Positions 16,811 through 40,262 of a stretch of 64,000 nt of DNA are shown piece by piece. The position numbers and the translations under genes were made by a program. Under the pieces are notes generated by a model that searched no databases, was not told the origin of the DNA, and saw only the letters and a program-made list of their open reading frames with translations. The DNA lies in NCBI RefSeq assembly GCF_018977255.1, contig NW_024704754.1, positions 18,786,001 to 18,850,000 on the forward strand, given 5' to 3'. Origin of the DNA: Callorhinchus milii (lineage: Eukaryota). Position 1 is the first letter of the stretch. Each line of letters starts with the position of its first letter.

Positions 16811-16841
<31 letters not shown>

Positions 16842-16882
16842 GGGGAGGGGAGGGGGGAGGTGGAGGGGTGAGGTGGGGGGGT

Positions 16883-16923
<41 letters not shown>

Positions 16924-17875
16924 GGTGGAGGGGGTGAGTGGGGGTGAGGTGGAGGGGGGGGGGGGGGGGGTGAAGGGGGGGGTGGGTGGAGGGGGGGGGG
17001 GGGGGAGGGGGGGGGGAGGTGGAGGAGGTGGAGGAGGGGGGGGTGGAGGGGTGAAGGTGGAGGAGGGGGTGGAGGTGGAGGGGGTGGAGGAGGTGGAGAG
17101 GGTGGAGGAGGTGAAGGTGGAGGGGGTAATGTGTGAGGGAGGTACCCCATTAACAGTTTGTTTGTTGGGTACTAATATTGTGTCATACAATATTAAGTTG
17201 TATCATACTGTCCCCCCATCCCCCACCCGCCAAAAAAAATGTCACTGGTCACTCGATCCGCGCCTGTTTGTGCGGACGCCACTGTGCGAAATTGGCTGCT
17301 GCGTTTCGCCCACAAGATACACAGTCAATCCCACTTCACGGTATATTCTGTGAAGCGCTTTGAGACGTCCCAACGCCGTGACAAGCTGCCGCGTCCAATG
17401 CAACGATCATCATTCTTATCCCCAACCACTTGTCAGCATGTCAGTGGATAGTAACGTTTTCCATGATTTTTCTTCCAAAAGGGAATTCGTTGAACAGCAC
17501 TATGTGACGCTGAAGAAGGCAAATCTAGAATTTCCCATACTAATCCGGGAGTGCGCGGAAGTGCAACCTAAACTGTGGGCTCGATATGGTAAGAGATACT
17601 GACTATAAAACACTTGGAGACCATTTGAACGACTATAAGCTGCTACGGATAATCCTACATTAGAAAAATATTATGAAAGACCTGTTACTCAGTATTTTTC
17701 TGACGGAAGTGTTGGATCTGTGGGAAAAGGGGACTGAAAGATTGTACCTGGTTATTGTTTTTTCTTCTCCTGTTTAGATTTTGGGAGAGAGCAAAGCATA
17801 CCACTGGATAATTTAAACTCCGAGCAAGTGGCAAAGGCCTTGGAGACTCTCATTAACCGCAATCCTTTAAAATAA
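16281..17875 (+). CDS. NDUFA2: NADH dehydrogenase [ubiquinone] 1 alpha subcomplex subunit 2 (102 aa)
   Basis: Exons 16281-16384, 17482-17588, 17778-17875: [83 protein letters not shown]...*. AATAAA at 17978-17983. Confidence 0.97.
16500..17126. repeat. G-rich tandem repeat in NDUFA2 intron 1
   Basis: (GGTGGAGGGGGTGAA)n-like with poly-G runs. Confidence 0.9.
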
Positions 17876-19063: not shown

Positions 19064-22000
19064 CTATGAGCCCTGAAGACAGAAAGAAAATAAACTGATA
19101 AACACATGGCAACGCAGATAGCTCCGGTCAAATACACTGGAGGCCAAAGACAGCTCATCTCAGAAGGGCTCATAGCTTCTTCCCATCTGCTAGGCTTAGG
19201 GCGATCAGCTTTTGCACCAGGCTATCGTGTGTGGGTCATCTTAAAACTATGTGCGACGTGTGGCCACTCAAGCAAGGTGTCGGGAGGAAATTAATTAAGC
19301 TGTTCCTTGATACTCTTCAGGCCAATTAAAAGATTTAACGGAGGAGACTCCAGGCAAAGAGTCTTTTCTACACAACAACAAAATTACATTTGTATAGTGA
19401 CTTTCATGTCGGGAGGACGTCCAAAGCAAATCGTATCAAAGTGACCCAACGAGGCTAACTCTGCATTCGTTGCTTACCTCGCTCTGCTGCGTGAAGTATT
19501 TGTCCATCAGGAAGTGGGCACGGACTCGAATCTCCTCGTTTGCATTGTACTGAATGGCCTCCACGGCCTGGACCCCATCTTGCTTCACAAACTCTACATA
19601 GGCCTGTGAGAAGCAATGGGAGCATTAGACAGGGGGAGGTGGGGGGTCAGGCCTATCAGGCAGAGCTCCGTACAACACAGCGCACCATCTGTGAACAATA
19701 ATCCTCGCATTTGATACAGCGCCTTATCACGTCTTTGAGACATCTCAAAGAATATGCTGCAGAGTGAATTGACTATATTTCTATATTTTCTGGGTGAAAT
19801 GCGGGAGATAATTGCGCACAGAAGTGTCCCACAAACAGTCGCGGATTGAGTAACTAAATTATTATTATTTATCCTTTATTTTTTTTCAGTCAATATGTTA
19901 GTCTATTATGAACAAACCGAGCAGTTGCTTTGTGAGTGTGACAGCCTCACCTCTGGGCAGTGTAAGAAGATCATGTTCAGCACTTCCAGTGCCAGACGCA
20001 CCACTTCCACATCAGCCATCCGGAGAGCGCAGCACAAAGCAGGCGTGACGTCCGCCTGGTACAGTCGCTGGCAGGTCTCTGGGCCCAGCTCAGCTACATT
20101 GCCCAGCACCAGCAGTGCCTGTCAGCACACATCATAGGGGAGCATGCTGCATATTTATCAGGGTGAGAACTCGCTGCAATATTAACAACTGCTGTTTCAC
20201 TTGGACCGGACTAGTGATCTGTGCACCTCGTTCAGTATCAAGCACAGATATTTCAAACTAGCTAACCAAACACTATCACTGTAACACAGTGCGCACCGAC
20301 CCACCCACCCACACACAAGACCAGATTCCCCGCCAGGCGCCCACTTACCTGAGTGTTTATTCCCCCTGAGAATGGGATCAGGCGGAGAAACATGGGGACC
20401 AGATTCAGACCCAGCACAGCCGAGCAAAACAGAGCGTCACCAGCTGCAGGGAGGGATGGGAAGTGGGAAAGAGGTGAATATGATTCATCAATGGCCTGGA
20501 TTTCCGCAGTTTGTTCAGTGAAATGAAATGCTCACAACAACAACTTGCATTAAATAGCACCCCGCACTCTGGGTAGTGTCCCAGAGCGCTTAATCCTCAC
20601 CTGTGAGGTTGTTGAAGAGCCAGAGACACTCCCGTGCCACAAAGGGCTGAGTGTGTAAGAAGCTTGTGATGAAGAGACCGAGGGTTGGCAGGAGGTCGCT
20701 TTGTTGGATCTGAGCTTTGCACTGATTTGTCTCCTCGCCGGCGATGAGATTTCCCAAACAGCGCACCACAGGGATGATCAGCTGAAGCCACAGTGGGGGT
20801 CGGTGGGGGTGGGGGGGGAGAGAAGCAAGGTTCAGACATGTTATTTTGCCCTCAGTGTTTGAACCAGCTCTGTATTGGGCATCAAGTGACACATTAGCAC
20901 AGAGTGTCTGGTGTAAGTAATAATAATAATAATAATCCTTGCATTTGTTATAGCGCCTTATCACGGCGTTGAGACGTCTCAAAGCGCTGCAATGGATATA
21001 CTGTAAAGTGGATTGATTGTATATTTTGTAGACAAAATAATAATACTGTACATCCTAGGAACAGCTTCTCGAGTGTCTTAAACTCACACCTCAATTGCCA
21101 ACTACTGTATCCATCATCTCCCCACACCCATCTGTCAATGAGCACACTGATGCCGATCTGTCTATGAAGCACTTTAAGACGAGTGCTGTGGTGACTGGTA
21201 TCACAGCCCACGAGAGGAGATGACAAGTCTCGGCTCCTGTACTTACCAAATGTACAGTGTCCGGAGGTGTCGCTGACCCAGGTTTGCCCAGAGCGATCAG
21301 GAGTGTCACTGCTCGACTCACAATGTCCTGAGAGACCAGATGTTCACTGATGGCACCACTGCAGGGAGAAGAGACAACGGTTTATTCAGTGCTCCTGGCT
21401 GGAGAGTATGTAAGTGGACACAATGTAATGGAGAACAGGACGACTGTTGGCACTCAGACACACGCACACAGGACAGACAGTTACCTGCTGATAATGTAGT
21501 GCAGACACCAGGCACTCTCCACAGCTGCCCACACCCCACACTGGGAGTCCGCAACCAACAGCTGGAGTAGCAGAGGAATCACCTTAGCCACCAGCTCAGC
21601 GCTGCAGAGTAACAGAGAAAACCTTATTCCTCCCGAATTGGATTTCAGTTACAGATCAGTCATGATCGTATCGATTGGTGGAACAGGCTCGAGGGGCTGA
21701 ATGGCCTCCTCCTGTTTCTATCGCAGCAGCGTTAAACAGGAGAAGACCTTTCATTCCATTGAGCCCACTCACTATTCCCTTCCTCCCACAATCCACAGGT
21801 TCTCTGACACTGTCTATAACAGACAGCTCGTCCGAAATCATAGTGAGGGCCAACAGACAGCGTTACAATAATAATAATCCTTGCATTTGACACAGCGCCT
21901 TATCACTCGTTGAAACGTCTCAAAGCGCTTCACGGGGTATACTGTAAAGTGGAGTGACTGTGTATTTTGTGGGCGAAACAAAATCCCATTGTGTCTGAAG

Positions 22001-24648
22001 GGCAAGAGACAATGTGATTGGGTTGGATGAACCCGCTCCGGAGTCTGATGGCCAGATTGACCGTGAGTTTGTTCTGCGCTCAGCCACAAACCCCCGCCCA
22101 CCCCCACCGGGTTACGGGCGTCAGAAGCCACTTACGGTACAATGTTGTGGGCTGACTCCTTGCCCTGCAGGAGCTGTGAGAGTGAATAGGCCGCAGCCTC
22201 CACCACGGCTCCCTCAGATGACTGTAACACAGACAGGATTGTCAACCGTATGTGTGCGATACCAGATGATGTCTTGGTAACAAGCAATAGCACCGAACTG
22301 CAGAGGGTGGTGATAATGTGAACATTTCTGCCACAAACCACAGTTCAAAGAAAATAATAACAGCCCAGACAAATGGCCTGTTTCTGTGCTGTAACAATGA
22401 CGATATTCAGGGCTGCACGTTCACAATGCTGTGTGTGGGGCGTGACTCACCTGTAGACAGGTAGCAAGCGCGTGAATCACACCCTGTGCCATGAGCTGCC
22501 TCCTGACCGCTGCATTCTCTGCTGCCAGGTTCCCCAGAATGTACAGACACAGCTCCTGCAACACAGTGACGCAAGCCCAGCTTGTATCCGAGAGAACTTC
22601 ACGCAGCACGGCGCGGTTGTGGTCTCGCTGGCGCGTGGGCGAAACCCTTACCGTGAATCTCACGCTCCGGCCCGACAGGTAAGTCAGGAGATAGGGAGTC
22701 GCAGGCAAACAGAGCAGAGAGATACTGGGGTCGTCTGAGTGAGAGAGCTCCAGCAAACAACCTGCTGCTTCCAGCTGTACCGAGGCAAGGTTACTGGTGA
22801 ACAGACCCACCAGGACATGCAGACTGCTGTCCAGGCTGCAAAAGAGCAGAACGTTAAGCTACTGACTGCCCGGACATTGTTACTGGTTCCAATGTGTCTC
22901 ATTTACAAATCTGAATCATACAAGTACAGAATGTTATAGTACAGACCCATCTGTCAGCCTTAATAATAATAATCCTTGCAATTGATATAGCACCGTGTCA
23001 CATCACTGAGATGTCTCAAAGTGCTTCACAGGGTATTGTAAAGTGTTTTTGTGAGCAAAACGCAGCAGCCAATTGCGCACAGCAGTGTCCCACGAACGGT
23101 CGTGGATTGAATGACCAAATTTGTTAATTTTTTTAAGGAAATTTTACCACCAGAAAGCGATCCACCAATGAACTAACACCAGGCTCCTACTAGTTGATGC
23201 GAGGTAAACAGACACGTGTGGAGTAAGGAAACTTGCCTAAGGTTACGCACCAATGTGCTTTTCTCTGGTACCCAACCGGGCTGAGAACCCAGGAGCCCAG
23301 GACGTCAGGAGTACCTGAGAAACGTCTGCTGTACCTCCTTCTGCTGGAGTGCCCGGCGCAGGCACCGCAAAGCCACGAGTCTGTCTTCAGTTCCCAGTTG
23401 GATCCTCTGGTGTAGCTGCAAAACCTGAAGCGATGAGAGACGAGAGGGTATTACAGCAGGGACTCCGACCGGAGTACGGATGAGGATTGATTACAGCGCA
23501 GGTAGTTTCAGGCAATGGTGTCTGACCTCCTCTCGGGTCAGTGGGCTTTCTGCGGTTTCCATCCTATCTCCATCCTCCCACACGTCCCTCAGCAATCTCT
23601 TGCTGACCAGCTGCTTCTCCTTGCGGGCCTTCCTGAGAGCTGCGCTCGAAACAGAGGGCAGGGATGAGAGCCGCGTCCGACTACGGCATCGCGCGGAATC
23701 TCACACCGCAACACACGGCGCAGGTCCCGGGAGGGCCATCGGGGCTTTGGCCCTCCGGGGCTGAGGGTGAGACTGGACCACGAGGGTTATCAACTGCAAT
23801 CGCAACCATCGGGTCATCGTAATAATAATAATCGCTTCACTCGACACACAGCGCCTTCTCACGGCGATGAGACGCCTCAAAGCGCTTTCCGGGGGTAACG
23901 GTCCCCCCCCCCCACCCCCCACCCCCAAACATTACGATTTGCCCACTCAACCCCACGGCTGTTTGTGGGGACGTCGCCGGGGACGCAATTGGCCGCCGCG
24001 TTTTGCCCACAAAGCGCACAGTCACTACACGACACAAAGTCACTGCACTGTACACGGTGTCCCGTGAAGAGTCGTCGCGAAGACGGGAGGAGGCGCCGGG
24101 TCAACCGCCGCCATTATTATAGTGTGTGGACCCCCCCCGACCCCCCCACCCGGGGGTCAGACACCCCCCCACCCCCCCACCCGGGGTCAGACACCCCCCA
24201 CCCCCCACCCGGGTCAGACACCCCCCACCCCCCACCCGGTCAGACACCCCCCCCCCCACCCGGGGTCAGACACCCCCCACCCCCCACCCGGGGGTCAGAC
24301 ACCCCCCCACCCCCCCACCCGGGGGTCAGACACCCCCACCCCCCCCGGGGGTCAGACACCCCCCCACCCCCCCACCCGGGGTCAGACACCCCCACCCCCC
24401 ACCCGGGGGTCAGACACCCCCCACCCCCCCACCCGGGGTCAGACACCCCCACCCCCCACCCGGGGGTCAGACACCCCCCCACCCCCCACCCGGGGGTCAG
24501 ACCCCTCCCGGGGTTTGGGGCCTAGTGACAGACTGAAGCCTGGGGCTGGAGTTGGGGACCGGGGCCGCTCACTCTGCTCCTGCTCCCGCCTGCGGCACTT
24601 GAACGCCTCTATGCTGTGCGCTCGGTAACGACCTCTTCCTCGCAGCAT
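19064..24648 (-). CDS. TMCO6: Transmembrane and coiled-coil domain protein 6 (importin-alpha-like ARM repeats), ~493 aa
   Basis: Exons (minus): 24573-24648, 23527-23639, 23315-23424, 22652-22835, 22451-22555, 22136-22221, 21485-21601, 21247-21358, 20601-20781, 20349-20443, 19951-20118, 19478-19603, and putative 19064-19072. IBB-like RRREQEQTLRKARKEKQLVSKRLL and ARM motifs (ELCLYILGNL, ECLWLFNNLT). Tail-to-tail with NDUFA2 as in human. The start codon and last exon are less certain. Confidence 0.9.
24130..24505. repeat. ~29-bp minisatellite in TMCO6 intron 1
   Basis: Repeats of CCCCCACCCGGGGTCAGACACCCC. Confidence 0.9.
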
Positions 24649-25032
24649 AGCCGGGCCTGGGGGGGGGCCGGGCCTGGGGGGGGTCTGAGCCTCGGCCTCT
24701 GCTGTCCGCTGAGCCCGGGCTGGAGGCTGAGAGACCCGGCGTCACCCGCCACCAATGTCGCGCTGCAGCGGCTCCCCGTGGCCACCGCGAGGTACTGCAG
24801 CGCCACAGCTCCGCACTGCCGCCCTCAGGCTGAGGGGGGAACGACAGGGCTCAGGGCCACGTCGTGCGAGACCAGCGATGGCCCAAAGCGCTGCACAGGG
24901 ACTGGTGTCTGTGTGTCTGTCGGTCCGCAGTGTGTGGTCGGTGGACATTACACGACCAATGTCCTGATCAAAGGAGAGTCAAAGCTGTTTCAATAGTTCT
25001 GGCAACAGCTGCAGCTCAGTGGGTGGAGCCGT

Positions 25033-25275
25033 GACCCGGGGGGCGAGCGGACCCGGGGGCGCGAGCGGACCCGGGGGGCGAGCGGACCCGGGGGGCGAGC
25101 GGACCCGGGGGCGAGCGGACCCGGGGGGCGAGCGGACCCGGGGGCGAGCGGACCCGGGGGGCGAGCGGACCCGGGGGGCGAGCGGACCCGGGGGGCGAGC
25201 GGACCCGGGGGGCGAGCGGACCCGGGGGGCGAGCGGACCCGGGGGGCGAGCGGACCCGGGGGGCGAGCGGACCCG
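25033..25275. repeat. ~19-bp CpG-rich minisatellite between TMCO6 and the kinesin-like gene
   Basis: Repeats of GACCCGGGGGGCGAGCG. Confidence 0.92.
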
Positions 25276-26059
25276 TGTCCGCTGGCCGGACAGTTTCCCT
25301 GCTCTCCCCGCGCCCCCCCGTTTCCCGAGTGGTAACCGGGAACCCGGTTGTCCGGCGGTTGGCGGATTGCTTTTCCGGGGCTAATAATCCCTTCAAAAAA
25401 AAAGGAAAAGTAACGATAATTCGGTCACCCGTTCCACGACTGTCTGTGGGACGCGGCTGCGCGCCTTTCGCTGCCGCATTTCGTCCGCAAAGTGTAGTCG
25501 ATTCGCTCTGCGGTGTATTCCGTGAAGCGCTTTGAGATGCCTCAAAGATGTGCAAAGGCGCTATATCAACTGCAAGGATTAGTATTAACAACAACTCGTA
25601 TTATATAACACCTTTCACACGGGATAGTGTCTCGGAGTGAACTTGTGTGTATGGCTCTTAAATAGAGCTCGAGACGAGAGGGGGAGACAGAGTTCGGGGC
25701 TTCTGAGCAATGCAAACAGACAAAACAGAGGCCTTGAATAAAAGTGAAACAGGTTATTAATAATTTACAGTTAATTCCTTCGATTGTAAAACAACGCCGT
25801 TCACCTGATAAAAAATTGACAAGAGATTTGCAGACGAGGAGCTGTGTGTGCACTTGCCGTCTTTTAATTATTGAAGCGCATTTTACAGGATCCCTGATCG
25901 GGGAGTCAGTGTAACCGGCCGCTGCTCCGCTGTAAGCACGATCAGGAATATACGAAGAGGGAAAGCGCACCGACAGGTGAGGATCATCTTCAAAATAGCC
26001 CAACTGGATACCATTCCACTGGGTGCTCGACCTCGGAATGAAAAATAACACAATTGTCC

Positions 26060-26200: not shown

Positions 26201-26526
26201 TTCCTAGTTACAGTTTATCCCTCTAATATATTCTGTGAAGCGCTTTGAGACGTCTAGAAGACGTGAAAAGCGCCATATCAAATGCAAGGAATATTATTAT
26301 TATTATTAACAATGGAAATGAGGTGATTTGCTTCCCTCTGAATCCTCTCTCGGACCTTTTTGGCCGGTGCAGGTCAGGTGTGTGTATTGGGGAGGTGGGG
26401 GGTTGGTTAATGACTGGGAGCCTGATTTTCTGTGGGGCTGACACTGAAGCGCTGAATCCTGAAACCTGTTTGCGTTCCCTGGGACGTAGCGGTGCGACTC
26501 TGCCTTTGTGCTTTGTGTTTCAGACC

Positions 26527-29500
26527 ATGGAGGAGGTGCCAGTGCAGGTGGCTGTGGGGCTCCAGCAGGTTTCAGGTCAGAAAACTCCCTGTCGACAGGG
26601 CAACATTTAGGCAATTCCCTCGTTTTCGGTGTCACACGTTAAATATGAGGAAAGTTCTAAACAAAACTGTCCCCTGAGGAAAGGGGTTGAGGGTCAGAGG
26701 GTTATGTGACCTCCTGTTTACCAACACTGGAGGGCCAAACCCCTACACAGGTAGGATCACACAATGCTTAGCCCAGAGCGCTCTCCAGTGCTCACCCAGG
26801 AGAGAACAACCACCTCAACACTGGGAACACTCAGCAGGTCAGGCAGCATCTGTGGAGAAAGGAAAGTTTTTTGGGGAAAATGTACATTTATTCGTACAGT
26901 AGTTTTGGTGCAACAAACGACTCAAAATACAACATCTTTTGTTACATTTTTGCCATGTATCCCGACACAAAACATTCCACTGCATTCCCTGTATTCGGGG
27001 CCGCTCTTCTATACGGTCAGCATCCCCTGATGTCGGTCTGTGGGGCAAGGAAGACAAAGGAGAAAATGGGGCAAGGAAGATAAAACAAAGTGGGGTATTG
27101 CGACAAAATGAGCGACCAATTTTATTTGGGGGATTGTTGGCCAGGACACCCGGTGAGAGGAACTCCCTTCTCTTTTCAAATAACGCAGTGGGGTCTTTAT
27201 CTGTCCTTGATCCATCAATACTGACCCCAGTGGAGTTCCTCATCAAGGATTGCTGCAATTTAAAGCATAAAGCAAGGGAGTCGTCTTGTTAGAGATATTG
27301 GGACAGCTGCCTATCATCAGCATTCTCACTGTCGCTCTCTCTGACTTCACAGACACAGGAGATGGACACTCGGCCTTCATCGAGGCGAAAGATTCAAAAA
27401 GTCTGTCAATCGCCAGTAGAAACAGCGGAGGAGAGAAGGTGGGTAACAGCCGAGAGTTAGAGATTAACGATCAGGTTAAAAGACTGAACATACACGTGGG
27501 TTAACATTTCAGGCTTCATTGAGAGAGCGAGAGAGAAAGAGAGAGAGAAAAAGAAAAAAGAAACAAGCAAATGTACCAGGCTGTCAAAAGACAGACATCC
27601 GTGTATTCAGTGCTTGTTTATGAAGGAAGAATAGCCAACTTTAGCTCGGAACATTGACCAACTTTACAGCAACAACCATGGTAGCATCCCAGAGCCAGCC
27701 TCGATACAGATGTTAACCCTACCCTTGCTCTCTGTATTGCGTTGTGTCTCCACAGAGCCACAGCTTCACATTCGATGTTGTCTTCGACCCGGACAGTGAG
27801 CAGGTAAGACATTTCATTTCGGTTTTAAAGTCAAACAAATTCAACCTTTTTGTGTATCTCACAAATTGGCCTCCAGTGTAAAACCCCGATAACGAGGGCT
27901 GTGTTTCAGGAGAGGGTGTACCTGGAGCTGGTGAGGCCGCTGATATGTAAAGCAAGGACGGGCTACAACACATCTCTGGTTGTGTCAGGGACACACACAG
28001 GCAGTAAAGCCAGGCTGCTACTGGGAGACGAGCTTCAAACAGGGATCATGCACAAGGTAAGACTTTCTCCTGTGTGAGGGGACTGGATAACCGGTCACAC
28101 TCCTACTGATCATCAGGGACACATAATAATAATGGTAATAATAATCCTTGAAACAACGCCTTATCACATTGTCGAGACGTCTCAGAACGCTTCACAGAGT
28201 ATACTGCAAAGTGTAGTGACTGTGTATTTTGTGGGCGAAGCACGACAGCCAATTGTGCACAGCAACAAAAAGTCAAGGATCACATTTATCCTTCACGTTC
28301 GGGAGTACTGACCTTTATTAGAATAATACTCGATTTGTTAACTGGAAGTAAATGCACCGTGGGCTTCTTTCAGTTGTTGAAGGATTTGTTTGAAGATCTG
28401 GAACTAAACGAAGAACAGAAAACACTCGCCACAGTTTCACACATTCAGGTAAGTTTCGTGCATTGAGAGCTCGGAACATTGACCAATGAGGTCCATGGGG
28501 AGTGGGTGGACAACCCTGGGAGGGAGGCAGGTGGTGCAGGCGGATTGTGTCAGCCAATTCAAATGGGGAATCGGTGAAGAAATGATGAAGACATTGAGAG
28601 ATAGAGTGCAGGACTCTTGCTGTTTATTTTCTCACTGGTCGGATGGAGTGCGAGTGCTGGTCCTTTCCTGTTCCCGGTGTTGTAGGAACATAGGAACAGG
28701 ATTAGAGAGTTCCAGATTTCCACTACTCTTTGAGAGGGAGAAAAAATGTCTCATTTCACTCCTAAATGGCCTTAGCTCTGATTTTAAGGTGACGGCCCCT
28801 TGTTCTGGTGCATGTTGGTGACTGTGATAAACGATTGTCTCTCTGTTTCCTGCACCGCCTGCCATCACAGCTACACACGGACGGTTCTGCTCTCGATCTA
28901 CTGAACCCACACGACAGAACAATGCGATGTGTCCAACACCCAGTGCTGGGTCTGTAAGTGCAGCCTGTGTTTTACCCTCTCACTGTCTGGGCGCTGTGGG
29001 TGGAGGCTGGTTAGTGGGTGTGTTAGGTGTAGATACAGTGTTCAGGATAAGGTGGGATCTCACAAGAGCTGATGGTTTTTGCCTCGTTTGATTTCAGAGT
29101 TGTGGAGGAGCTGAGCGAGTTTGTGGTGGGCAGTTGTGAGGAGGCGTGGAGCCTGTACCGACAAGGCAGAGAGGCTGAAAGGCTGGCAGGAGACCTCGCA
29201 GACAGGTAGGGGGTTTGGTTTGGGGTTTGGGAGCACAGTGTTCCGTCCGACCTTTATAAACCACAGGAACAAAATGCCAGAGCCTTCAGGACTACACAAT
29301 GCACTCCCTTTCTCTCTCCCTCCTGTGGTTTCAGCCACTACACCCCCGAAGCTTTGGAATTCTCACCCCCATCCCTCCACCTTGTCCCCTCCTTCCCCTC
29401 TTTCAGATCACGACTAAAGACCTTCCTCTTCGACCGTAGTTACAATCTCCTCCTCCCTCCCTGTGACTCTGGGTCAGGCTCCGCCACTGTTAAGCGCTCC

Positions 29501-32500
29501 GAGACACTGCCCCTAGTGAAGTCCGCTGTATAAATGTAAGTTTTTGTGGTGGTTTCAGGTGCAGTTCATTGTTCACAGTCACTCTGGAGCAGCGGGAGGT
29601 CAGTGCTGGCGTGAGTGTGTGTCGTTCCTCTGTCCGGGTCTATGAGCTGCCGGGCAGCGCTGGGAATGGGTAAGTGTCCTCTCTCAGCAATGGTTCCTTC
29701 TAGAATGCAGCTCTTGAAGAGCCGGATAACAACTCAAGGTGGAACGTAAGCGTTTCCCAAAGTTACAAAGAAGTGCTGTTGTTTTTGTTTTGCAGTGAAT
29801 CTACCTGCGCTCTCTCTCTCTCTCTTATCTCCATGGGACGTCCTCCTGACGTGAAAGGCACTTTATAAATGGAATCTTGTTGTTGTTGTTGTTCCATGGA
29901 GTGTGTCCTTTAATGTGTGTGTCTCTCTCTCTCTGCAGTGTGTCTCCTCTGAAGCGCGCTGTGGATGAAGCGAAGATTCACACAGAGCCAGGGCTCGGCT
30001 GTACAGATGCCCTTCTGAGTCAGGCTCTGGGAGGGAACAGGTGCTCTGTGCTGATATCCTTTCTACACCTGCCAGGTGCGTCTCCGTTCAGACTGAAACA
30101 CAAGTAAACTCTAACACCCCGATACCCCCACGAGCCATCGTTGTGAACACACATACTACAGTCGCGTTATTACGGATTGTGCTTTAATCACATTGGTTTA
30201 ACAATGCATCAGGATAACCCTCTGTGTTCCCTCCGCCTTCGCCTCACTCCCTTTCTCGCCTCCTTCAAGGCCTGTCTCAAGACCCTTCTCTTCCACCGCG
30301 CTTTCTGTCACCCTCCTAACCCCTCCCTCCCTACTCTGCACCCCTCCTGATCCCCAACCCCAGCTCGAGTGAAAATCCCTGACTGTCCAGTGCCTTGGGA
30401 CGTCCTCCCGACGTGAAAGGCTCCGTGTAAATGTCATGTGTCGTCGTTGTTGTTGTGTAAAACCTTCTCCTCTCTGACCGTGTGTCTTTTGGTGGATGAT
30501 GTGAAGTTGAGAGGCTTGTACCTGTGTGCGCTGACAGAGTCCTGGCCTGGCGAGGCTGCCCTGGCTCTGTCCCTGGCTCGAAGCGCTGCTCTCCTCACCA
30601 ACCAGGTCCGGCAGAACCGCTGGGATCCCCCAGAGCTGACGCAGAAGCTCCGACTCCACATCCGCCAGGCCCGGGAGCAGCTCGGCTCCGGGAAGGACGT
30701 GTCGCAGCAGGAGGCGGAGCACTTGGCACAGCTCGTACACGAACTGCAGGCGAGTAACTCCTCGGTCACCCCCCCGCCCATTCCCACCTTCCCAAACCTC
30801 GCTGCCCTTCACTATAAGTCTCTAACGGATACATATTTATATTATCTGGACAGGTGGTGAAGAAGCAGCGGTGGGAGAAGAAGAGATTCCAGTCCCAACA
30901 CTGCCGGGCAGAGAGGAAGCAGCACCTCATTGCTAAGGTTGGTTTCTGCTGTTTGGTAAGAGAGTCCTCCACTCTGTGCCTACAGCCCTGTTCATTCACA
31001 CTCCACCCTGCACCCTCTCCTCCTCGCACCCCTGCTCTCCCACACGCACACCCCCTCTCCGCTCCCCACAGCTGCTGCAATGTTTTTCTGTGGGCAGGGG
31101 TTCCTGGAGTTGGCCTTGAAGCTGACGTGCAGCGAGCAGCAGCGAGTGCAGTTGGCAGAGGAGCTCAGACAGACACAACAGCAGATCAGAGAGGTTAAGG
31201 AGCGTCTCAAGAACGAGGTTGGGGCGTATTTGAAAGGTGGGTCAGCGCCGCCGGCCCGAGACTTCATTTGAAACCTATTGGGAGCAGCACAGTCAATAAC
31301 ACTGACCATTCCCCCACACCCCCCACAACTCCCTCCACCCCAACCCCAGCCAAGCTCTCCACTGTCTCGCTCCTCCCTGCCTCTGCGACCTATTGAAACT
31401 TCACCAACCTGTTCGCTCCGTCCACTCAGCAGGCACTGGCCTGATGCACGTCCCCCGCTCTGCCCACCCCACCATCGGCGGTCAAGCTGTCAACCTTTCT
31501 GCCCCCACCCTCTGGAGCTCCATCCCAGGGCGCCTCTGCCTCCTGTTTTGCCTCCTTCAAGACCCATCTCAAGACCTTTCTTTTCGACTGTGCCTCCGGT
31601 CACTCTTCCCTCCTCCACCTCTCTCTGATCCCAATCCCCAGCTCGGGTGCAAACCCCTCAATGTCCAGCAGCTCGGGATGTCCTCCCGATGTGAAAGGCG
31701 ATGTGTAAAAGCAATTTGTTGGAAAAGGGGAAATATTTTCTCAAATAAGTGACAAAACTTGCCTGAATGTTTTGTCCGGATTTCTGCTGCGAAGCTGAAC
31801 ACGGGGACGAGAGTGAACTGGAAGTCATCATCGGGAACATCCAGCAGCTGCAGACGAGGCTGAAGCAGAGTGAGAGCAACCTGAAGGGGCTCAGACACAA
31901 ACAGGACCAACTGCACAGTGCGACCAGAGCCGGCTACGAGGTGGGGGGGGTCGTCCTGGCTGTAAACTCTCTCTCTGTCCTGGGATTCTCCCTTTATATC
32001 TGACCCGTTGTCCAGTTACAGGAACAGGAGGAGGCCATTCAGCCCCCTCGAGCCTGCTCAGGAGTTCCAGATTTCAACAACCCTTTGTGTGTAAACGTTC
32101 TTCCTGATTTCACTCCTAGCTCTAATTTTAAGATGATGTCCCCTTGTTCTGGGTTCCCACCAACCACCAGAGGATGTTATTTCTCTGTATCTACACCCCA
32201 TCGAATCCCTATATTATTTTAAACACCTGAATTAGATCCGCCCTCAATCTTCTAAACGCGAGAGAATACAGACAGAGTTTATGGAACCTGAATTCAGGAG
32301 GGAGGGAGAGAAAGGAGTTTCTCCCGACCTCCTTGACAGTAATCCTGGAGACTGTTTGGTGATTGGCCTCATGGCTGTTGGCGGGTTGAGGGTGCTATGC
32401 AATGTTCGAGGCGTGAAGGTGAAGCTCTACAATGGAAGTTCTTGCTTTGCTCCCCAAAGGGCAGTCCATCGGCTGAGTCTGAAATCGACCTCCTGTATGC

Positions 32501-33818
32501 AACGGGGCTGGAGAAGAGGAAGTGCTTAGAGGAGGAAAACATGGCTCTGATCGAGAGAGAGTTGTCCAAAATGGATGAGCATAGAGCAGAGAAGGTAAAG
32601 CTGATACAGAGAGACAGAGAGACAGAGAGAGATCTCTGCAAATACACGCAAAATACATCCTGTTTGTTTCCACTTGTTAAACTACTTCTCGGTTGGAATC
32701 CCGACCACTCTTTATGGACGATGTTAACAATCCCGCGATACTATTCGAAAAGAGACAGGAGTTTGGCTGCAAATAGTAATACAGTAATCCTTGCATTTGA
32801 TGTAGTTTCCTATCGTGGCTTCCAGACGTCTCAAAGCGCTTCACTTGACAGCAAATGCCTGTGAAATACATTGAGACGTTACGGGCAAGACATGAAATGT
32901 AAGGGCTATTGTCGTCACAAGGATCCCTCTGTCAGGCAGGGGGGAGCGAGGCTGCGGGTGGGCCACAGGGGAGCACAGGGCTGCGGAGGGAGCAGGAGCT
33001 GCTGGTCCTGTACCTGGTGACCCTGCGCAGGGAGAAAGCCGAGGCCGAGAGGGACCTGCGGGCGCTGTACCAGCAATGCAGACTGGAGCTGGAGAGACAG
33101 AGGTGCCAAAGTCTCGAGGTCAGTCTGTCCCAGTTTTTTTTCCTTCCCTTGTTCATTTTTTTTCCCCGCTTTCTACGGGAGAAAATCAGAGCTGGGGGGA
33201 ATCTCAGCCCCAACCGCCCGTAACAGAGTATGTCAAAAGTAAAACTGTGTCATGGGGACGTCCTCCTGACGTGAAGAGCGCTATGTAAACGCACGTTGCT
33301 GTTGTGTAAGAAGTCTGGGGGTTTGCAGGCTGGGCCAGCAGAAGCCTCCTGACACACCTCTTCCCGTCTCGTCCCAAAAGATGCTCCGTATGTTCCGCGA
33401 GGTGTCCGAGAATCAGCGGGAAGCTCAGGACAAACGTTACCGCAAGCTGCTGGAGGAGGCCATACAGGACACCCTGTACCTCGCTGCCCAAACACAGCAC
33501 CTGGAGCTGGAGAATAGACAGCTGAAAGACGGTAAGGGTTCGGGGTGCGAGAGATTCTGATCGGAATGTTACTGCGTTGGCGGCCAGCAAAGATCTTCCT
33601 CACGAAAATCTGGGGAGCGTTTCCGACACGCCGATGTCGTCAAATTCGAGGGGCGTGATGCACTATTTAAGATGACGGGAGATGTGGGCAGGTTGTGGGT
33701 TAAATCTCTCTCCCAAGTCCATCACCCGGTGTGGTTTTGCTTTCCAGCAGCGATGAAGCAGCGAGAGCAGCAGGCTGTCCACCTGCAGCCAGACAGCGGA
33801 GAGTTCTCACCAACATAA
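26527..33818 (+). CDS. Uncharacterised kinesin-like protein with degenerate motor domain and coiled-coil tail (~654 aa, 17 coding exons)
   Basis: Exons 26527-26575, 27353-27438, 27756-27803, 27910-28056, 28374-28448, 28871-28953, 29098-29205, 29559-29669, 29939-30075, 30538-30749 (GC donor), 30854-30937, 31098-31236, 31795-31940, 32460-32594, 32936-33118, 33381-33531, 33748-33818. They total 1965 nt, with all phases compatible and no internal stop. Kinesin landmarks: MEEVPVQVAV, SFTFDVVFD, GYNTSLVV, DLLNP, VEELSEFVVGSCEEA, LFTVTLEQ, LLSQALGGN. AATAAA at 34110-34115. Confidence 0.88.
32015..32280 (-). mobile_element. CR1-clade LINE 3' fragment
   Basis: CAGAACAAGGGACATCATCTTAAAATTAGAGCTAGGAGTGAAATCAGGAAGAACGTTTACACACAAAGGGTTGTTGAAATCTGGAACTC on the minus strand, plus the CR1 3' tail motif (GGCTCGAGGGGCTGAATGGCCTCCTCCTGTTCC). 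Confidence 0.65.
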
Positions 33819-36684
33819 CCCACTCGTGGGCCAAAAAAAACAGGTCTTCCCCAGTGGCCGAATACCCACTACGCTCCACCGTCCTGACTCGCCCACCAAT
33901 AATGGCCACTTGGGAGAGGACCAGTTTTCATTACACTGTGGACGACCTTTTAATCTCATTTCGCCAACCCTTTGCCATAGCCCATTATACACTTACACCC
34001 CACATTTGTGTCTGACTCTCTTTTAAACTGTCAACTGACGTGGTATCTATGGTCTCTAGGCTGGGCAGTGTGAGTTGTTTTTGTCCTGTGTTCTTGTATT
34101 TTATGTTGAAATAAAGCTATCGCAGTGTCTAAGTAACAGTATCCAGATGTTCTTTTAACACCAGATGAAGAGAGAGAGAGAGGAACAGTCAGCCCAGGAG
34201 AGCAGAGATTTCCCTCGAGGACAGGTTAACAACACGACCTGGAGGCAAAGAGTTCAGTGGTTTAACGAATGATTCTGTCTGATCAATTCACACTAACCGG
34301 TTCAGCGTGTGTGAGCTCAGTGCATTTGCTTACACCATGGAAATGACTTCACTGGAGTCTGAAAAGGATTATAAATATCTTTATATCACTGAGCTGATCA
34401 TAGGAACCCATACATTGTGCCAGTTTTGCTTGACAAGAGAAAAGGAACACATTTCAGAACCTCATATCATAGAAACATTGAAATAAAAATATCAAAGCTA
34501 ATGCCGTTTCCGTCAGGGAGAGGATATGATGAGGAGTCTGATGGCAAACACTGGAATAAGAGCAAGAGACTGGGACTGAGATAGCAGCCATGATGCTGGT
34601 CACAGTGAGAGGAGAAAATGGTCCCTCCTTTGGCAAATTAACATTTCATGATTATCTGGTTGACAAGCGTCAGTCAGTGAGCGAGCGATCGAGCAAGCAG
34701 AGGGTTCGGTTCCAGCTGATTATTTTGGTAAAGCGAATGTTCCATCAACTACAGCACTCGATCAACAAGATAACCCGATAGACTAAACCAGCCTCTGCGA
34801 TGAGCATTGCATTATATCGTGCGGCGGGTGGGGGGGCTTGGTGGGAGGGAATCAGCCACGAGCTGAAGAAAGCCCAACTCATTGGGGTTGCATCAATAAA
34901 GCAAATAAATATTTCAGCTGCTAAAGTTACTGGAGAGAAGTCTACGCAGCCTCATTGCCAGAACAGAAAGGACCCACAGCACCGGATCATATCAACTAAA
35001 CCAAACCATGCAAAATATCCTCACGCCCCCATGGGTTTCATCACCTGTTGCACTGACACTGCAGCACAGACGGGGGAATGTGTGGCGGGGGTGGGGTGGG
35101 GGGGTTGGAGTGTATATGTGTGGAGGGGTGGGGGGGAAACCAGGAGGAGGCTTAAAGTACATATTTATCAATAAACTGAAATGCGTTGACTTTTTAAGTC
35201 CGTATTAAAAAAAACCCTCCGGTTTCTGCTTGGAATCACAAACTTTCCATTCGGAAACGAGAGGCAAAACACCAGTTTGGTAACCGGGTGTGAAAGCTAC
35301 TTCAGTCTATAAAGAGTTTAAGTGGATTTAATAATACTAATAATAACAATCCTTGCATTTGATATAGCGCTTTTCACGTCTTCCAGACATCTCAAAGCGC
35401 TTCATAGAATATACCGTAAAGTGAGTTGACTGGAAAGAGCGCCTTGGGATGTCCCGACCCCCCCCGACGTGAAAGGCACTATACAAATGGAATTTTGTAT
35501 TGCTTATTTTGTGGGCGAAACGCGGCAGCCAATTGCGCACGGCAGTGTCCCACAAACAGTCCTGCACACCCTCCCTGCCCCGGCCTCCAAGCACTCTACA
35601 AACATTGGACACAGGAGCCAAACAGTTTAAAAAAAGCAAACTGCGAATTACACACTCTATTGGTTCGCGGTTATTTTGCTGCCGTGAAAACGGCATTGGC
35701 AGGTTAAAGAAAATCGGAATAAAGACGTCTGTAAAAAGACGTTGATCTTTTTACATGGCAGTAGAGGGGATGGCAGTGGCAACGGCACCGGGGGTCCTAT
35801 ACTGTGTCCCTGTAACACGTCCCCCGGAGACCTCAAATCATAACATGAGCCTAAGATATCAGTAGGATGTTGAAACTGTCAGCTGTTGAGTATCGGGGCT
35901 TGCTATCCTGGGAGTAACAGCTGTGCAGAGTAACACACTGAACACCAGTGTAACACACAGGACAACACCTCCTGATACTGACAGGGGCGTCTGCCCCATT
36001 GCAGACGATGGCAATGAACCAGCCTCACTCCTTCTTTGCACCGCGCCAACCCCCACACACCCCAACACCACACAGCTTTCACTCAGCAATTCAGATGTAT
36101 TGCTTAAATTAGAATCAGAATGACAGCTAAATGGAGAGTGCTGCACAGAAACATCGGCGCGTCACAGAGCACCACGAACAGCAGAGTGTAAACCCGAGGC
36201 AGCTCAGGCTGCAGATACAGTAAACACGGCACTAAAACACTGTCCAAAGTCACTGCGACAGACGGCGTAAATGAGACACGGAATCTTTTTTTTTCTTTTT
36301 AAAGATAAACTTATAACCTGCACCTGAGGCTGACATTCAGACGCTTTCTAAGCGAGGTTTTTTTTTAATATGTAAAAGTGCAGTGATTAAGTCACGGGTA
36401 TAAGACTTATTAAGTGGTAAACCTACCGAATAAGATCCTTGCAATGGTACAGACGAGAAATTCCAGCCCACATTAAGCGTTGCTGGTGTAACCCGAGTAA
36501 ATCAAACGCCTTCAAGTTTCTCCTGGTCAGGTTAAGGCAGATAATTGTCACCCAGTGACCCAGGCCATCAGCCAGTCTCCGTAAGGTAAAAACCACATAG
36601 CCGCACCGTGAATAACTGCACGTTCCCTTATTCATCAGAATTGGCAGTAAAATGGGCAAAGCTTTTCGGCGCGAGCATAATCAA

Positions 36685-37318: not shown

Positions 37319-38302
37319 CTACTTAACCCGATAGTACAGGTGAATGGCCAGAGACACCAGCAGCACAGCCACGAGAAAGTGCGGTGTGAGCTGTAACGAG
37401 AAGAAGCAGACGGAGAGAGTGGTGTTGACCAACATGGAGCAGGAGATGACGAAGAGACGAGTGATGTTGGTGTCGTACTTCATGACCACGGACATGAGCA
37501 GGCCGTTGAGGGCCTGAGTGCTGATTATCAGGCCCACCCACACCGAGTACCCCTGAAAGAAGCCTCCGTCCGGAGAGCTGGCCAGGTGAACCCCCAGATT
37601 AATCAGCAACCCAAACAGGTACAGGAACAGGTTCTGCAGGTTGAGCGGCAGCTGCTGGGATTTCAGGATGCGTTCGGTGAAGACGGCAGAGAGGCCGGAT
37701 ATGGTGCAATACACCAGCATCATGGCCAGCCCCTGCATGGTGATGTACAGGTGCGTTTCCGTCCACGGCTCCTGCCGACTGCTGAAGCCGCTGTAGGTTT
37801 GGCAAGCGCCGGCGGCCATGAGCAAGAACAGTGCCAGCCACTTGAGGAGAGACAAGGGCTTGTGCAGCAGGATGGTGTACAGCACAGCTGTGCTGGCGAT
37901 CTTGAGGTTACTGAGCACCTGGAAGGTGCTGGGGTCCATGTGGCGCTGCATGTGCACCACCAGGTTATTGTTGAGGGCGTAGAGGAGAGCGGGGATGGCC
38001 AGGGGGCACACACCACGGGCAGAGAGCGTAACGCCCGCCTTGCCACCGCGGTCCTGGGCTGTCCACAGCGCGATTGACACGAGGAGCTTAGCCAGCTCGA
38101 TGAGGACGACGACTGAAGACGAACTGAAGGGAATCTGCCCGTCGATCTTACACCAGCTGATGAGGGGGGCATGCGAGCCGTACACCAGCACAGACACTAG
38201 CAGCAGGAAACCCCATCGCACCCGGCTCCGGGCCCGGCCCTTGCCAGGCGGGGGCGAGCCGAGCGGACTCCCCGGCTCCTTCAGTCCGGTCATCTTCACC
38301 AT
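37319..38302 (-). CDS. SLC35A4: Probable UDP-sugar transporter SLC35A4 (327 aa, single coding exon)
   Basis: Multi-TM ORF with YGSHAPL, FSSSSVVVLIELAKL, AIPALLYALNNNL, HMDPSTFQVLSNLKIASTA, QALNGLLMSVVMKY. Syntenic position and uORF match SLC35A4. Confidence 0.96.
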   Translation of the reverse strand: MVKMTGLKEPGSPLGSPPPGKGRARSRVRWGFLLLVSVLVYGSHAPLISWCKIDGQIPFSSSSVVVLIELAKLLVSIALWTAQDRGGKAGVTLSARGVCPLAIPALLYALNNNLVVHMQRHMDPSTFQVLSNLKIASTAVLYTILLHKPLSLLKWLALFLLMAAGACQTYSGFSSRQEPWTETHLYITMQGLAMMLVYCTISGLSAVFTERILKSQQLPLNLQNLFLYLFGLLINLGVHLASSPDGGFFQGYSVWVGLIISTQALNGLLMSVVMKYDTNITRLFVISCSMLVNTTLSVCFFSLQLTPHFLVAVLLVSLAIHLYYRVK

Positions 38303-38431
38303 CGCAGTTTAAATATCGCTAAAAGAACGTTTGTATTCACTTGTAAACTCAGTTCGTCCAACGCGCAGATTGAAACAGGAGCGGCTCTGCTTGGGTTGGG
38401 TCGACCTGTGAGGTTTAAGGCAGCAAAAAAA

Positions 38432-38704: not shown

Positions 38705-40183
38705 TCAGTTTGGCCTCTTCTTCATGGATTCCAAGTAATCCTTCACGGTCTTCTCGATGTTGGGGATGTTGAGGTTCTGGGCGGCGTAGATGCCTGTGCA
38801 GGTGCCGATGGCCACCCCCAGCACGGCCGAGGAACGAAGTTTGGCCACCACGTATCCCGCCAGGAAACCCTTCACGAACGGAGAGGCCAGCACCGTGCCG
38901 CCCTAAAACCACAGCAAAGTCACCGGGTCACAGACACGGGCTGGCAAACACTCACACTCACTGCTGCTTAAACAATGTGCTGCACAATAATGATCATCAT
39001 CATCATCTTTGTATTTGATACGGCGCCTTATCACGTCTTCGACTCAACGCGCTTCACTCAATGTACAGCGAAGTGGAGTGACTGCGTATTTTATGGGCGA
39101 AAAGAGGGAGCCGATTGCGCACCGCAATGTCCCACAAACAGTCGTGGACTGAGTCACCCAATTATTTTTTTGAGGGGTTGTTATCCCCGGAAGGTGATGC
39201 GCCAATCGACTAACAGCCGGGTTCCCAGTTATTGCCAGATCAACATGGGCGGTGTAGTGAGGAAATTTACCTATGGGTTGCGCCCCTCCCCGGGGGAATC
39301 AAACCGCGGGGCGAGGGCTAAGCAGTACGTTACGGGGCGCAGGGGAATGGAGGGTTCATTGTGACTCACGGATGGCAGTCCCGCTTGCACCTCCTCCTCC
39401 ACCCGCCGCTGGATGTCCTCCAGTTGGCCCTTCAGCTGCGCCAAGTCTTTCAGTTTGCCGAGCGAGTCCTGAACAGATAAAGATGGACTGAATATAACCA
39501 CATCAGTGACCCTCAGTCACTCCACTCCACTCCACTCACTCTGTCTGTCTGTCTGTCACCGCCATCCAATTACCATTCAGGTCCCAAACTCTCCCCCTCC
39601 CTCCCTCCCCCCCCCCCAGGGCCCCTCTCTCCCCCTCCCCCAGGGCCCCTCTCCCCCTCCCTCCCTCCCCCCCCCCACCAGGGCCCCTCTCCCCGTCCCC
39701 TCTGCCCCCCCCCCCCCCTCCCCCCCCCCCCCCTCCCTTTCTCCCCCCCCCCCCAGGCCCTCTCCCCCTCCCCCCCACCAGGGCCCCCTCTCCCCCTCCC
39801 CCCCCCCCACCAGGGCCCCTCTCTCCCCCTCCCTCCCTCCCCCCCCCCCCAGGGCCCCTCTCTCCCCCTCCGCCCCCCCCCCACTAGGGCCCCTCTCTCC
39901 CCTCTCTCCCCCCTCCCCAGGGCCCCTCTCCCCCTCCCTCCCTCCCCCCCCCACCAGGGCCCCTCTCCCCGTCCCCTCTGCCACCCCCCTCCCCCCCCCC
40001 CTCCCCCCCCCCCTCCCCTCTCCCCCCCCTCCCTCCTCCCCCCCCCCCCCCAGGCCCTCTCCCCCTCCCTCTCCCCTCCCCCAGGGCCCCTCCCTAGGAC
40101 CCCTCTCCCCTCCCCTCTCCCCCCCCCCCCCCCCCGGGCCCCCCCCCCCCCGCCTCACTGCCGCTGACCTTGTCGTCCGCCAT
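38705..40183 (-). CDS. SLC35A4 upstream-ORF microprotein (SLC35A4-MP / AltSLC35A4), 103 aa
   Basis: Exons 40169-40183 (MADDK), 39370-39468 (DSLGKLKDLAQLKGQLEDIQRRVEEEVQAGLPS) and 38705-38902 (GGTVLASPFVKGFLAGYVVAKLRSSAVLGVAIGTCTGIYAAQNLNIPNIEKTVKDYLESMKKRPN*). GT-AG introns, phase 0. Confidence 0.95.
39590..40152. repeat. C-rich tandem repeat in SLC35A4 intron 1
   Basis: (CCAGGGCCCCTCTCCCCC)n-like. Confidence 0.9.
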
Positions 40184-40262
40184 CTTAACCGCCCGCACAT
40201 GCGCAGCGCGGCCTCTCCCCCCCACACCGCCAGAGGGCGCTCTCACTGACCGCCATCTGTTT
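40176..40262. promoter_or_regulatory. SLC35A4 proximal promoter (probably shared with divergent APBB3)
   Basis: NRF1-like CGCACATGCGCA at 40194-40205, CTCF-like CCGCCAGAGGGCGC at 40227-40240, YY1-like CGCCATCT over the ATG and near 40251. Confidence 0.55.

Follow-up and report, generated by a model that had tools for sequence, protein, structure and literature searches.

An intact gene of Callorhinchus milii encodes a predicted kinesin-fold protein in which the nucleotide-binding motifs are degenerate

A gene of the elephant shark Callorhinchus milii encodes a protein that is predicted to fold like a kinesin motor and in which every established nucleotide-binding motif is altered. The gene occupies positions 26527-33818 on the forward strand of a 64,000-nucleotide stretch of DNA (NCBI RefSeq assembly GCF_018977255.1, contig NW_024704754.1, positions 18,786,001 to 18,850,000), which is called the window here and whose numbering is used throughout. 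An original prediction, made from the letters of the window, had described it as an intact gene for a 'pseudo-kinesin'. After following up this prediction by computation, we are highly confident that the gene is a real, expressed and conserved pseudo-kinesin. The best overall explanation, which we consider likely, is that its product belongs to a family of ATPase-dead, non-motor proteins with a kinesin fold. Judged by sequence likeness, the gene represents the chimaeras in an unnamed gnathostome family whose representative in the mouse genus is called RIKEN cDNA E230025N22.

Forward-strand reading of the gene, with a table of splice sites and phases, yields 17 exons that add up to 1965 nt (654 codons plus TAA), and the phases of all exons are compatible. 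Each of the 16 introns ends in an AG acceptor and 15 of them begin with a GT donor; the remaining one, intron 10, has a GC donor at 30750. The start codon stands in the context ACCATGG (26524-26530), and AATAAA polyadenylation signals occur at 34110-34115 and at 34482, with one RNA contig ending ~15 nt past the first of these signals if it is colinear with the genome. Because an AG acceptor sits 3 nt before the ATG, an upstream 5' non-coding exon is likely. The start, the stop, the 17 exons and the open reading frame (ORF) of ~654 amino acids that had been proposed are borne out, as are the good Kozak context and the polyadenylation signal, and the observation of an intact 17-exon gene is confirmed.

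The exons that encode the head carry the expected kinesin landmarks. Exon 1 (49 nt, 26527-26575) encodes a beta1-like start with GLQQ at the place of RxRP, exon 2 covers 86 nt (27353-27438), and exon 3 (48 nt, 27756-27803) encodes FTFDVVFD. These are followed by exon 4 (147 nt, 27910-28056), with GYN and the broken P-loop GTHTGSKA, by exon 5 (75 nt, 28374-28448), and by exon 6 (83 nt, 28871-28953), with DLLNP and HPVLG. An alpha3-like helix and the first half of a broken switch I are encoded by exon 7 (108 nt, 29098-29205), whereas the rest of switch I (RCSS), LFTVTLEQ and the broken switch II ELPGSA reside in exon 8 (111 nt, 29559-29669). Exon 9 (137 nt, 29939-30075) encodes a shortened equivalent of alpha4, loop 12 (L12) and alpha5, then LGGN and beta8. 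Exon 10 (212 nt, 30538-30749) encodes alpha6, a neck with a near-invariant tryptophan (Trp310) and the first helix of the tail. Together with VPVQVAV and LL.QALGGN, the landmarks named in the original prediction are present in the exon translations, and so are the altered motifs and the C-terminal block that it listed.

The remaining exons encode the tail. These are exon 11 (84 nt, 30854-30937), exon 12 (139 nt, 31098-31236), exon 13 (146 nt, 31795-31940), exon 14 (135 nt, 32460-32594), exon 15 (183 nt, 32936-33118), exon 16 (151 nt, 33381-33531), which carries a conserved C-terminal block (YRKLL..IQD..L), and exon 17 (71 nt including TAA, 33748-33818). A start of exon 10 at 30514, with an acceptor at 30512-30513, was rejected in favor of 30538, because contigs begin at about 30535 in three runs and because the database protein reads ..LPESWPG.. 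at this place. Intron 10 (30750-30853) combines the donor CAG/gcgagt with a normal AG acceptor, and RNA contigs leave exon 10 at 30746 and resume in later exons. The acceptor of exon 17 is a tandem cagcag (33746-33751), where splicing to 33748 gives 654 amino acids and splicing to 33751 gives 653; public models use both, and the upstream acceptor fits the contigs of three runs.

A public protein agrees with this exon model. XP_007900146.1 (P0013; C. milii, 654 amino acids), which bears the automatic name 'chromosome-associated kinesin KIF4A isoform X1', contains all 17 whole-codon exon pieces exactly and in order. These pieces cover 647 of its 654 residues, and the other seven are split codons. 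Residues 1-16 correspond to exon 1, and exons 2 and 3 match the protein exactly. This public protein was used as a stand-in for the exon model in full-length searches and in fold prediction. A search with the 70-residue piece of exon 10 against 1.84 billion representatives retrieved a 653-amino-acid protein with 100% identity, whose cluster includes XP_007900146.1; the sole difference between the 653- and 654-amino-acid forms is the tandem acceptor of exon 17. Two of the five matches in this search (P0002 and P0004) were dropped: they are tandem-repeat proteins whose similarity is limited to residues 7-31 and 4-35 of the query, and kinesin-like sequence was absent from both on reading.

The assignment to the kinesins is carried by profile, sequence and structure comparisons. 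With a database protein equal to the exon pieces (P0001), the Pfam Kinesin profile PF00225 yields 82.1 bits against a cut-off of 29.3 (E 4.7e-23). XP_007900146.1 has 114 matches among the sequences of the Protein Data Bank (PDB) at E<=1e-3, and the best 60 listed are all kinesins (top match 5.1e-17). A profile of 43 family members retrieves 120 PDB matches, the best of which is KIF4 (2e-24) over the entire motor. Even exon 4 alone aligns on the P-loop with kinesin motors in 10 of its 10 PDB matches, none of which is significant singly (E 0.15-0.95); its search against the ESM Atlas gave no usable match.

An AlphaFold2 model built from the family alignment has a mean predicted local distance difference test (pLDDT) score of 85.5 and places a kinesin motor fold in an N-terminal head (residues 1-310). 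Foldseek returned 353 PDB matches for this model at E<=1e-3, with chain 9ijj_d at the top (1.6e-25). When compared by VIA-align, 348 of 983 chains reach Z>=8. The best match is autoinhibited KIF13B (6a20; Z 36.0, root-mean-square deviation 3.3, 370 residues aligned), and the remaining 49 of the best 50 rows have Z scores of 30-34, with deviations of 2.4-3.0 when only the motor is aligned and larger values when neck or stalk is included. These 50 rows are kinesin motors, save two axoneme central-apparatus entries with unnamed chains. The claim of a true kinesin fold is thus upheld by the 82 bits on the identical database protein and by Z scores of 30-36 to kinesin motors.

Within this fold, the four motifs that serve nucleotide binding are altered. 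The N1 motif RxRP reads GLQQ. In place of the P-loop GxxxxGK[ST] the protein has GTHTGSKA, where the Walker A glycine and Ser/Thr are both replaced and the lysine is out of register; HMMER aligns sgthtgska to the kinesin P-loop. The switch I signature SSRSH corresponds to DRCSS, with both serines and the histidine gone, and DxxGxE of switch II corresponds to ELPGSA, with aspartate changed to glutamate. HMMER aligns ladrcss and elpgsa to switch I and switch II, respectively, of a kinesin-8. Degeneracy of all four motifs, as first proposed, is therefore seen in the exon translations, in the HMMER alignment and in the family alignment. Because all four are broken, loss of ATPase activity is well supported, and the protein very probably lacks this activity.

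The face that contacts tubulin in kinesins is also reduced. Compared with KIF4, the family is 25 residues shorter directly after switch II, where loop 11 (L11) lies and alpha4 begins, and 13 residues shorter after the P-loop, in agreement with the earlier claim that L11 and alpha4 are shortened. The model retains two short helices in the alpha4 region (residues 237-249 and 257-266). Net charge of the tubulin-facing segment is zero or below in 12 of the 13 members checked, whereas the KIF4 counterpart, as aligned, has 11 Lys/Arg versus 7 Asp/Glu. Basic residues of the YRDSK type are replaced. On balance, these features suggest that canonical microtubule binding is absent. They also bear on the alternative of a rigor-like microtubule binder without motility, which would scaffold signals on microtubules in the manner of KIF26 or KIF7. 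Such a role would fit the kept kinesin fold and a match to the Pfam profile PF16796 'Microtub_bd' (E 1.4e-7), and the available portions of two reports (PMC12919046; 10.64898/2026.05.20.726728) describe KIF7 and KIF26 as non-motile kinesins able to scaffold. However, the PF16796 match is confined to residues 26-146, in the N-terminal half of the head and away from the tubulin face, and the absence of about 25 L11/alpha4 residues, the replaced YRDSK-type residues and the non-positive charge all argue against this alternative, which we judge quite improbable.

The head is followed by a kinesin-like neck and then by about 330 residues that are predicted to be almost wholly helical in the AlphaFold2 model. 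A crude test of heptad a/d positions gives scores of 0.4-0.6 only at residues ~361-460 and is elsewhere no higher than in the head. Given these scores, we describe the tail as predicted helical and not as coiled coil; of the coiled-coil C-terminal half that had been proposed, the helical character is borne out by prediction and the coiled coil itself is putative. Conservation is highest in the head and in the last long helix (54% and 50% identity between Callorhinchus and sharks) and lowest in the middle stalk (39%, falling to about 20% in comparisons with tetrapods). Over the 48 residues of the C-terminal block, identity is 61% with sharks and 31% with mammals. The pattern YR.LL...LQD.I.L..QNQ.L of this block is found in 42 of 42 aligned members that reach the C-terminus, with single-position substitutions in some; the 43rd member, a ray model (P0005), ends at residue 362. 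The block thus proved as conserved as it had looked in the original prediction.

This architecture raises the alternative that the protein is an obligate heterodimer partner of a catalytic kinesin, in which a dead head pairs through the helical stalk and tunes stepping or targeting, as Vik1 and Cik1 do with Kar3. The heads of Vik1 and Cik1 bind microtubules, whereas the Callorhinchus head is without a basic alpha4/L12 face and is N-terminal, not C-terminal. In addition, the stalk is the least conserved region, which would be unusual for a specific interface. The layout of a head with a long helical tail and the conserved neck with its near-invariant Trp310 are in keeping with such a partner, and non-catalytic motor domains have precedent (available excerpt of PMC4338441). 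Overall, we regard a heterodimer partner as improbable.

Members of the same family were found well beyond C. milii. A word-based search with P0001 retrieved proteins from the sharks Heterodontus, Stegostoma, Cetorhinus and Scyliorhinus at 45-49% identity, a stingray fragment, and two turtles at 31-32% (E 1e-70, 32% over 95% of the query), along with a grey seal protein (E 1.7e-17, 27% over 92% of the query). When the seal protein was used as the query, 193 relatives were obtained, of which the best 120 listed come from placental mammals (two without a name); a search with a turtle protein gave 43 relatives, which come from turtles, crocodilians, squamates and birds. Independently, the Atlas places the cluster of XP_007900146.1 beside that of the 'Riken cDNA E230025N22 gene'. 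The Callorhinchus protein and the RIKEN/'uncharacterized LOC' set have the head, the helical tail and the C-terminal block in common. No teleost, amphibian, marsupial, lamprey or invertebrate member surfaced in these searches, which scored only the 8000 top word-sharing candidates and are uninformative on these groups. Two gene models, P0144 (Mauremys) and P0176 (Manacus), fuse the family to leucine-rich repeats (PF00560, PF12799 and PF13855), and these fusions may be read-through into a neighboring leucine-rich-repeat gene.

Database names give little guidance to this family. Among the 120 mammalian proteins listed, the first names are 'uncharacterized', 'hypothetical', 'unnamed' or none, with the sole exception of a rabbit protein called 'plectin'; in UniRef, the proteins of two whales also bear the name 'Kinesin motor domain-containing protein', and one listed relative is named 'Riken cDNA E230025N22 gene'. 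Across the family, automatic names conflict (KIF4A, KIF4B, KIF3A, klp-20, kinesin-II, KIF17, golgin and plectin). Because cluster and family mates carry such conflicting names, we consider 'KIF4A' an artefact of best-hit naming. Orthology with KIF4 was rejected in view of 24% identity to the KIF4 motor, the broken motifs, the length of 654 amino acids and the discordant names of cluster mates. The earlier remark that the protein was not recognized as any named human KIF is consistent with a family that bears only 'uncharacterized' or contradictory automatic names.

The kinesin origin of the family becomes harder to read along the tree. The PF00225 score falls from 97.8 bits in Heterodontus to 82 in Callorhinchus and 43 in a tortoise, and no Pfam kinesin domain was matched in the chicken, seal or mouse-genus proteins. 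A phmmer search of the mouse-genus protein against PDB sequences also gave no match. Yet when the seal protein was modelled from the same family alignment (pLDDT 74.7), the resulting model matched kinesin motors at E 1e-14 to 1e-17. Thus the origin is still readable by sequence in the chimaera and shark proteins, whereas in the mammals and the chicken tested it is unreadable by Pfam.

Conservation and transcripts support an intact gene. Full-length orthologues with open reading frames are present in sharks, turtles, crocodilians, squamates, birds and many placental orders. Among variants in the coding parts of RNA contigs, 6 are synonymous (415 sites) and 4 are non-synonymous (1346 sites), for a pN/pS of about 0.21 (binomial P 0.015). 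Merging two changes in one codon gives 5 versus 4 (P 0.04) or 5 versus 3 (P 0.02). This synonymous excess is a hint of constraint.

Sequencing runs were called RNA by guess. Of the 13 runs listed, 11 contain part of the window; in seven of them, drawn from two studies, the share of its sampled words is 0.07-0.26, and the higher of these values are close to the exonic share. Contigs of four runs were aligned to 27900-33899, a range that takes in exons 4-17, with exons 1-3 lying outside it. The splice joint 31233>31792 (GT..AG), which leads into exon 13, is carried in 4 of the 4 runs. One contig of 1260 nt has pieces on exons 10, 12, 13 and 14, with 85 unlisted letters where the 84 nt of exon 11 fit, and such an 85-letter gap occurs in the contigs of two runs. 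In another contig, pieces on exon 7 and exon 9 are separated by 113 unlisted letters, a gap into which exon 8 (111 nt) fits. Exons 16 and 17 are joined in three runs. Contig pieces at 27907-28056 cover exon 4 in three runs, exon 8 is represented in two runs, and exons 7 and 15 are each represented in one; exons 12, 14, 16 and 17 are likewise covered by contigs. The listed contigs on exon 5 all extend into the flanking introns. Spliced junctions 4-5, 5-6 and 6-7 are in none of the contig rows listed for the four runs. With spliced contigs in 4 of 4 runs from two studies, and open orthologues from chimaera to mammals, the suggested check for spliced transcripts gave a positive result, and the proposal of an intact, conserved gene holds.

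Two kinds of repeat touch on these contigs and on the window. Intronic repeats at 28100-28299, 29700-29899, 30300-30499, 31500-31699 and 32700-32899 share a gacgtcctcc.gacgtgaaagg core, reach word depths of thousands to tens of thousands, generate many false joints between copies, and resemble an abundant transcribed element of the short interspersed (SINE) type. Low-complexity arrays that are rich in G+C and strongly strand-skewed lie at 400-1100, 15300-17200, 24000-25500, 39500-40250 and 49100-49900, where both strands have ORFs in several frames with Pro- or Gly-rich translations.

The history of the motifs was followed in the alignment of 43 family members. RxRP and SSRSH are found in 0 of 43. 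Callorhinchus, sauropsids and mammals have differing broken versions of the motifs, and in mammals the P-loop is deleted. In three sharks (P0006, P0003 and P0007) Walker A is canonical (GTYASGKS or GTNAAGKS) and DLTG or DLSG is kept, with RxRP and SSRSH gone; Heterodontus and Cetorhinus are among the sharks with an intact Walker A. The simplest reading of this pattern is that N1 and switch I were probably already gone when cartilaginous and bony vertebrates diverged, and that the rest would have been lost at least two times later.

Several observations weigh against the reading as an ATPase-dead pseudo-kinesin. GxxxxGK[ST] is present in 3 of the 43 members, all sharks, and DxxG in 5, all elasmobranchs. 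Since these elements are kept in some elasmobranchs, their losses are not ancestral to the whole family, and nucleotide binding may survive in part of it. The same motifs are what would favor the alternative of an atypical yet active nucleotide switch or motor. That alternative is nevertheless highly improbable for the elephant shark protein, in which none of RxRP, the P-loop, switch I and switch II is intact, and the P-loop deletion of mammals argues likewise. With regard to the fold, the PF00225 match spans only profile positions 24-236 of 327, and when exons were searched individually a Pfam kinesin match was seen in 0 of 15 pieces at E<=10. This exon-wise search left out exons 1 and 3 (16 amino acids, under the 20-amino-acid minimum), took exon 10 as 30516-30749, and gave nothing beyond sub-threshold coiled-coil noise, which was weak and confined to exons 12 and 13. 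Exon 9 alone had 0 matches among PDB sequences, and the fold itself rests on a predicted model. Dimerisation is an assumption, because the heptad result gives no clear call.

Further points on the same side concern constraint and expression. The variant test rests on 10 contig-derived variants, the runs are labelled RNA by guess only, and some contigs are unspliced, spanning intron 5 or reaching into introns 6 and 9 (28419-28897, 28979-29097 and 30076-30131). The family evolves fast (56-73% identity by region between seal and gerbil), and the available part of one report (PMC6065068) gives a ratio of non-synonymous to synonymous substitution rates (dN/dS) above 1 for the gene in hares. Mammalian models range from 424 to 692 amino acids, and this variation suggests that some lineages may be losing the gene. 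Contigs colinear with introns 5, 6 and 9 could be retained introns, pre-mRNA or carry-over of DNA. A decaying pseudogene or an annotation artefact would account for the degenerate catalytic motifs, the fast evolution and the unspliced contigs. It would not be expected to keep a 654-codon ORF open across 17 exons, to yield spliced contigs in two studies, to have full-length open orthologues from chimaera to mammals, or to show an excess of synonymous variants. This explanation, already disfavored in the original prediction, is scarcely credible.

We therefore return to an ATPase-dead, non-motor member of the kinesin fold as the preferred explanation. Such a protein could not hydrolyse ATP, and would neither walk on microtubules nor dock to them in the canonical way. 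Its head, still folded, would be a module for binding other proteins; self-association or the binding of partners would fall to the helical tail and the C-terminal block, and the whole protein would be a non-motor scaffold or adaptor. This scaffold role is tentative. The alignment with autoinhibited kinesin-3, in which the neck and the first tail helices take part, offers a lead that the protein may adopt a closed conformation. A broader scenario, possible but somewhat unlikely as a whole, is that jawed vertebrates including mammals carry an unrecognised kinesin-fold gene at differing stages of motor loss. In this scenario sharks may still bind nucleotide, the losses would have been separate in chimaeras, sauropsids and mammals, and the head would be locked on the neck helices, in a manner close to autoinhibited kinesin-3, as the permanent 'off-state' interaction module of a fast-evolving scaffold. 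No functional study of the E230025N22 family was found in the literature searched, where mentions of the mouse gene, in the portions of articles available, are rows of expression tables and the remark on dN/dS in hares. Literature on inactive or pseudo-kinesins and on degenerate P-loops likewise offered nothing on the family, as judged by titles or the beginnings of abstracts.

By the usual count, mammals have 45 KIF genes in the kinesin superfamily. The locus described here reveals a further, unnamed kinesin-fold family that extends from chimaeras to placental mammals. Because a kinesin origin is readable in the chimaera and shark copies, these can serve to annotate the 'uncharacterized LOC' genes of mammals and the RIKEN genes. 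Motif loss, which is graded from lineage to lineage, provides a natural series for the passage from a motor ATPase to a pseudoenzyme, and the family poses the question of what role a kinesin fold plays without ATP hydrolysis or a hold on microtubules. It also exposes systematic misnaming in public annotation, where KIF4A, KIF3A, KIF17, klp-20, golgin and plectin have been applied to one family.

In the window, the gene lies between an exon of IK and a nucleotide-sugar-transporter ORF, with a WW exon beyond. The IK exon, recognized by Pfam through its RED_N domain, is at 12053-12493 on the reverse strand. The transporter is a single-exon ORF of 329 codons at 37322-38308 on the reverse strand (Nuc_sug_transp, Pfam E 4.1e-45), and the WW-domain exon is at 45834-46280 on the forward strand (Pfam E 1.1e-7). 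Armadillo-like open pieces at 20593-22858 on the reverse strand have no Pfam match at E<=0.01, and open pieces of a WD-repeat gene (WD40/beta-propeller by Pfam) are at 56570-57199 and 59735-60184, also on the reverse strand. The armadillo-like pieces may be TMCO6-like, the transporter SLC35A4-like and the WW exon FE65/APBB-like (APBB3). The order in the window may resemble the mammalian neighborhood IK-TMCO6-CD14-SLC35A4-APBB3.

Comparison with known systems delimits what kind of pseudo-kinesin this may be. KIF4A shares the kinesin-fold head, and the family profile finds its top PDB match in KIF4 (2e-24); KIF4A differs through 24% identity in the motor, the broken ATPase motifs of the Callorhinchus family and the 25 residues that this family lacks after switch II. 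KIF26A, KIF26B and KIF7/Costal2 are far longer proteins and still bind microtubules. They resemble the Callorhinchus protein in having a kinesin head without transport and, in the available parts of the sources, are thought to scaffold signalling. In contrast to theirs, the tubulin face of the Callorhinchus protein is truncated and not basic, and no automatic name or PDB match, among those listed, leads to them.

The motor-like domain of the budding yeast proteins Vik1 and Cik1 lies at the C-terminus and escapes detection by sequence; it binds microtubules and pairs with Kar3. The Callorhinchus head (residues 1-310), by contrast, is N-terminal and detectable by Pfam. The likeness lies in a non-catalytic motor-like domain on a helical stalk (available excerpt of PMC4338441). 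The analogy to Vik1/Cik1 and KIF26A drawn in the original prediction accordingly stands for the non-catalytic head and is weakened by the truncated, non-basic segment that faces the microtubule.

When neck and first helices are included, the best structural matches are autoinhibited kinesin-3 proteins and the central-apparatus chains 9ijj_c, 9ijj_d and 7n61_0X, which may be KIF9/KLP1. KIF13B (6a20) aligns over 370 residues with Z 36.0 (model residues 2-381) and KLP-6 (7wrg_A) over 366 with Z 33.8 (model residues 4-470). The Callorhinchus protein differs from kinesin-3 in being without an FHA domain and a K-loop, at 17-21% identity, and the fold-back of its first tail helices is seen in a monomer prediction only.

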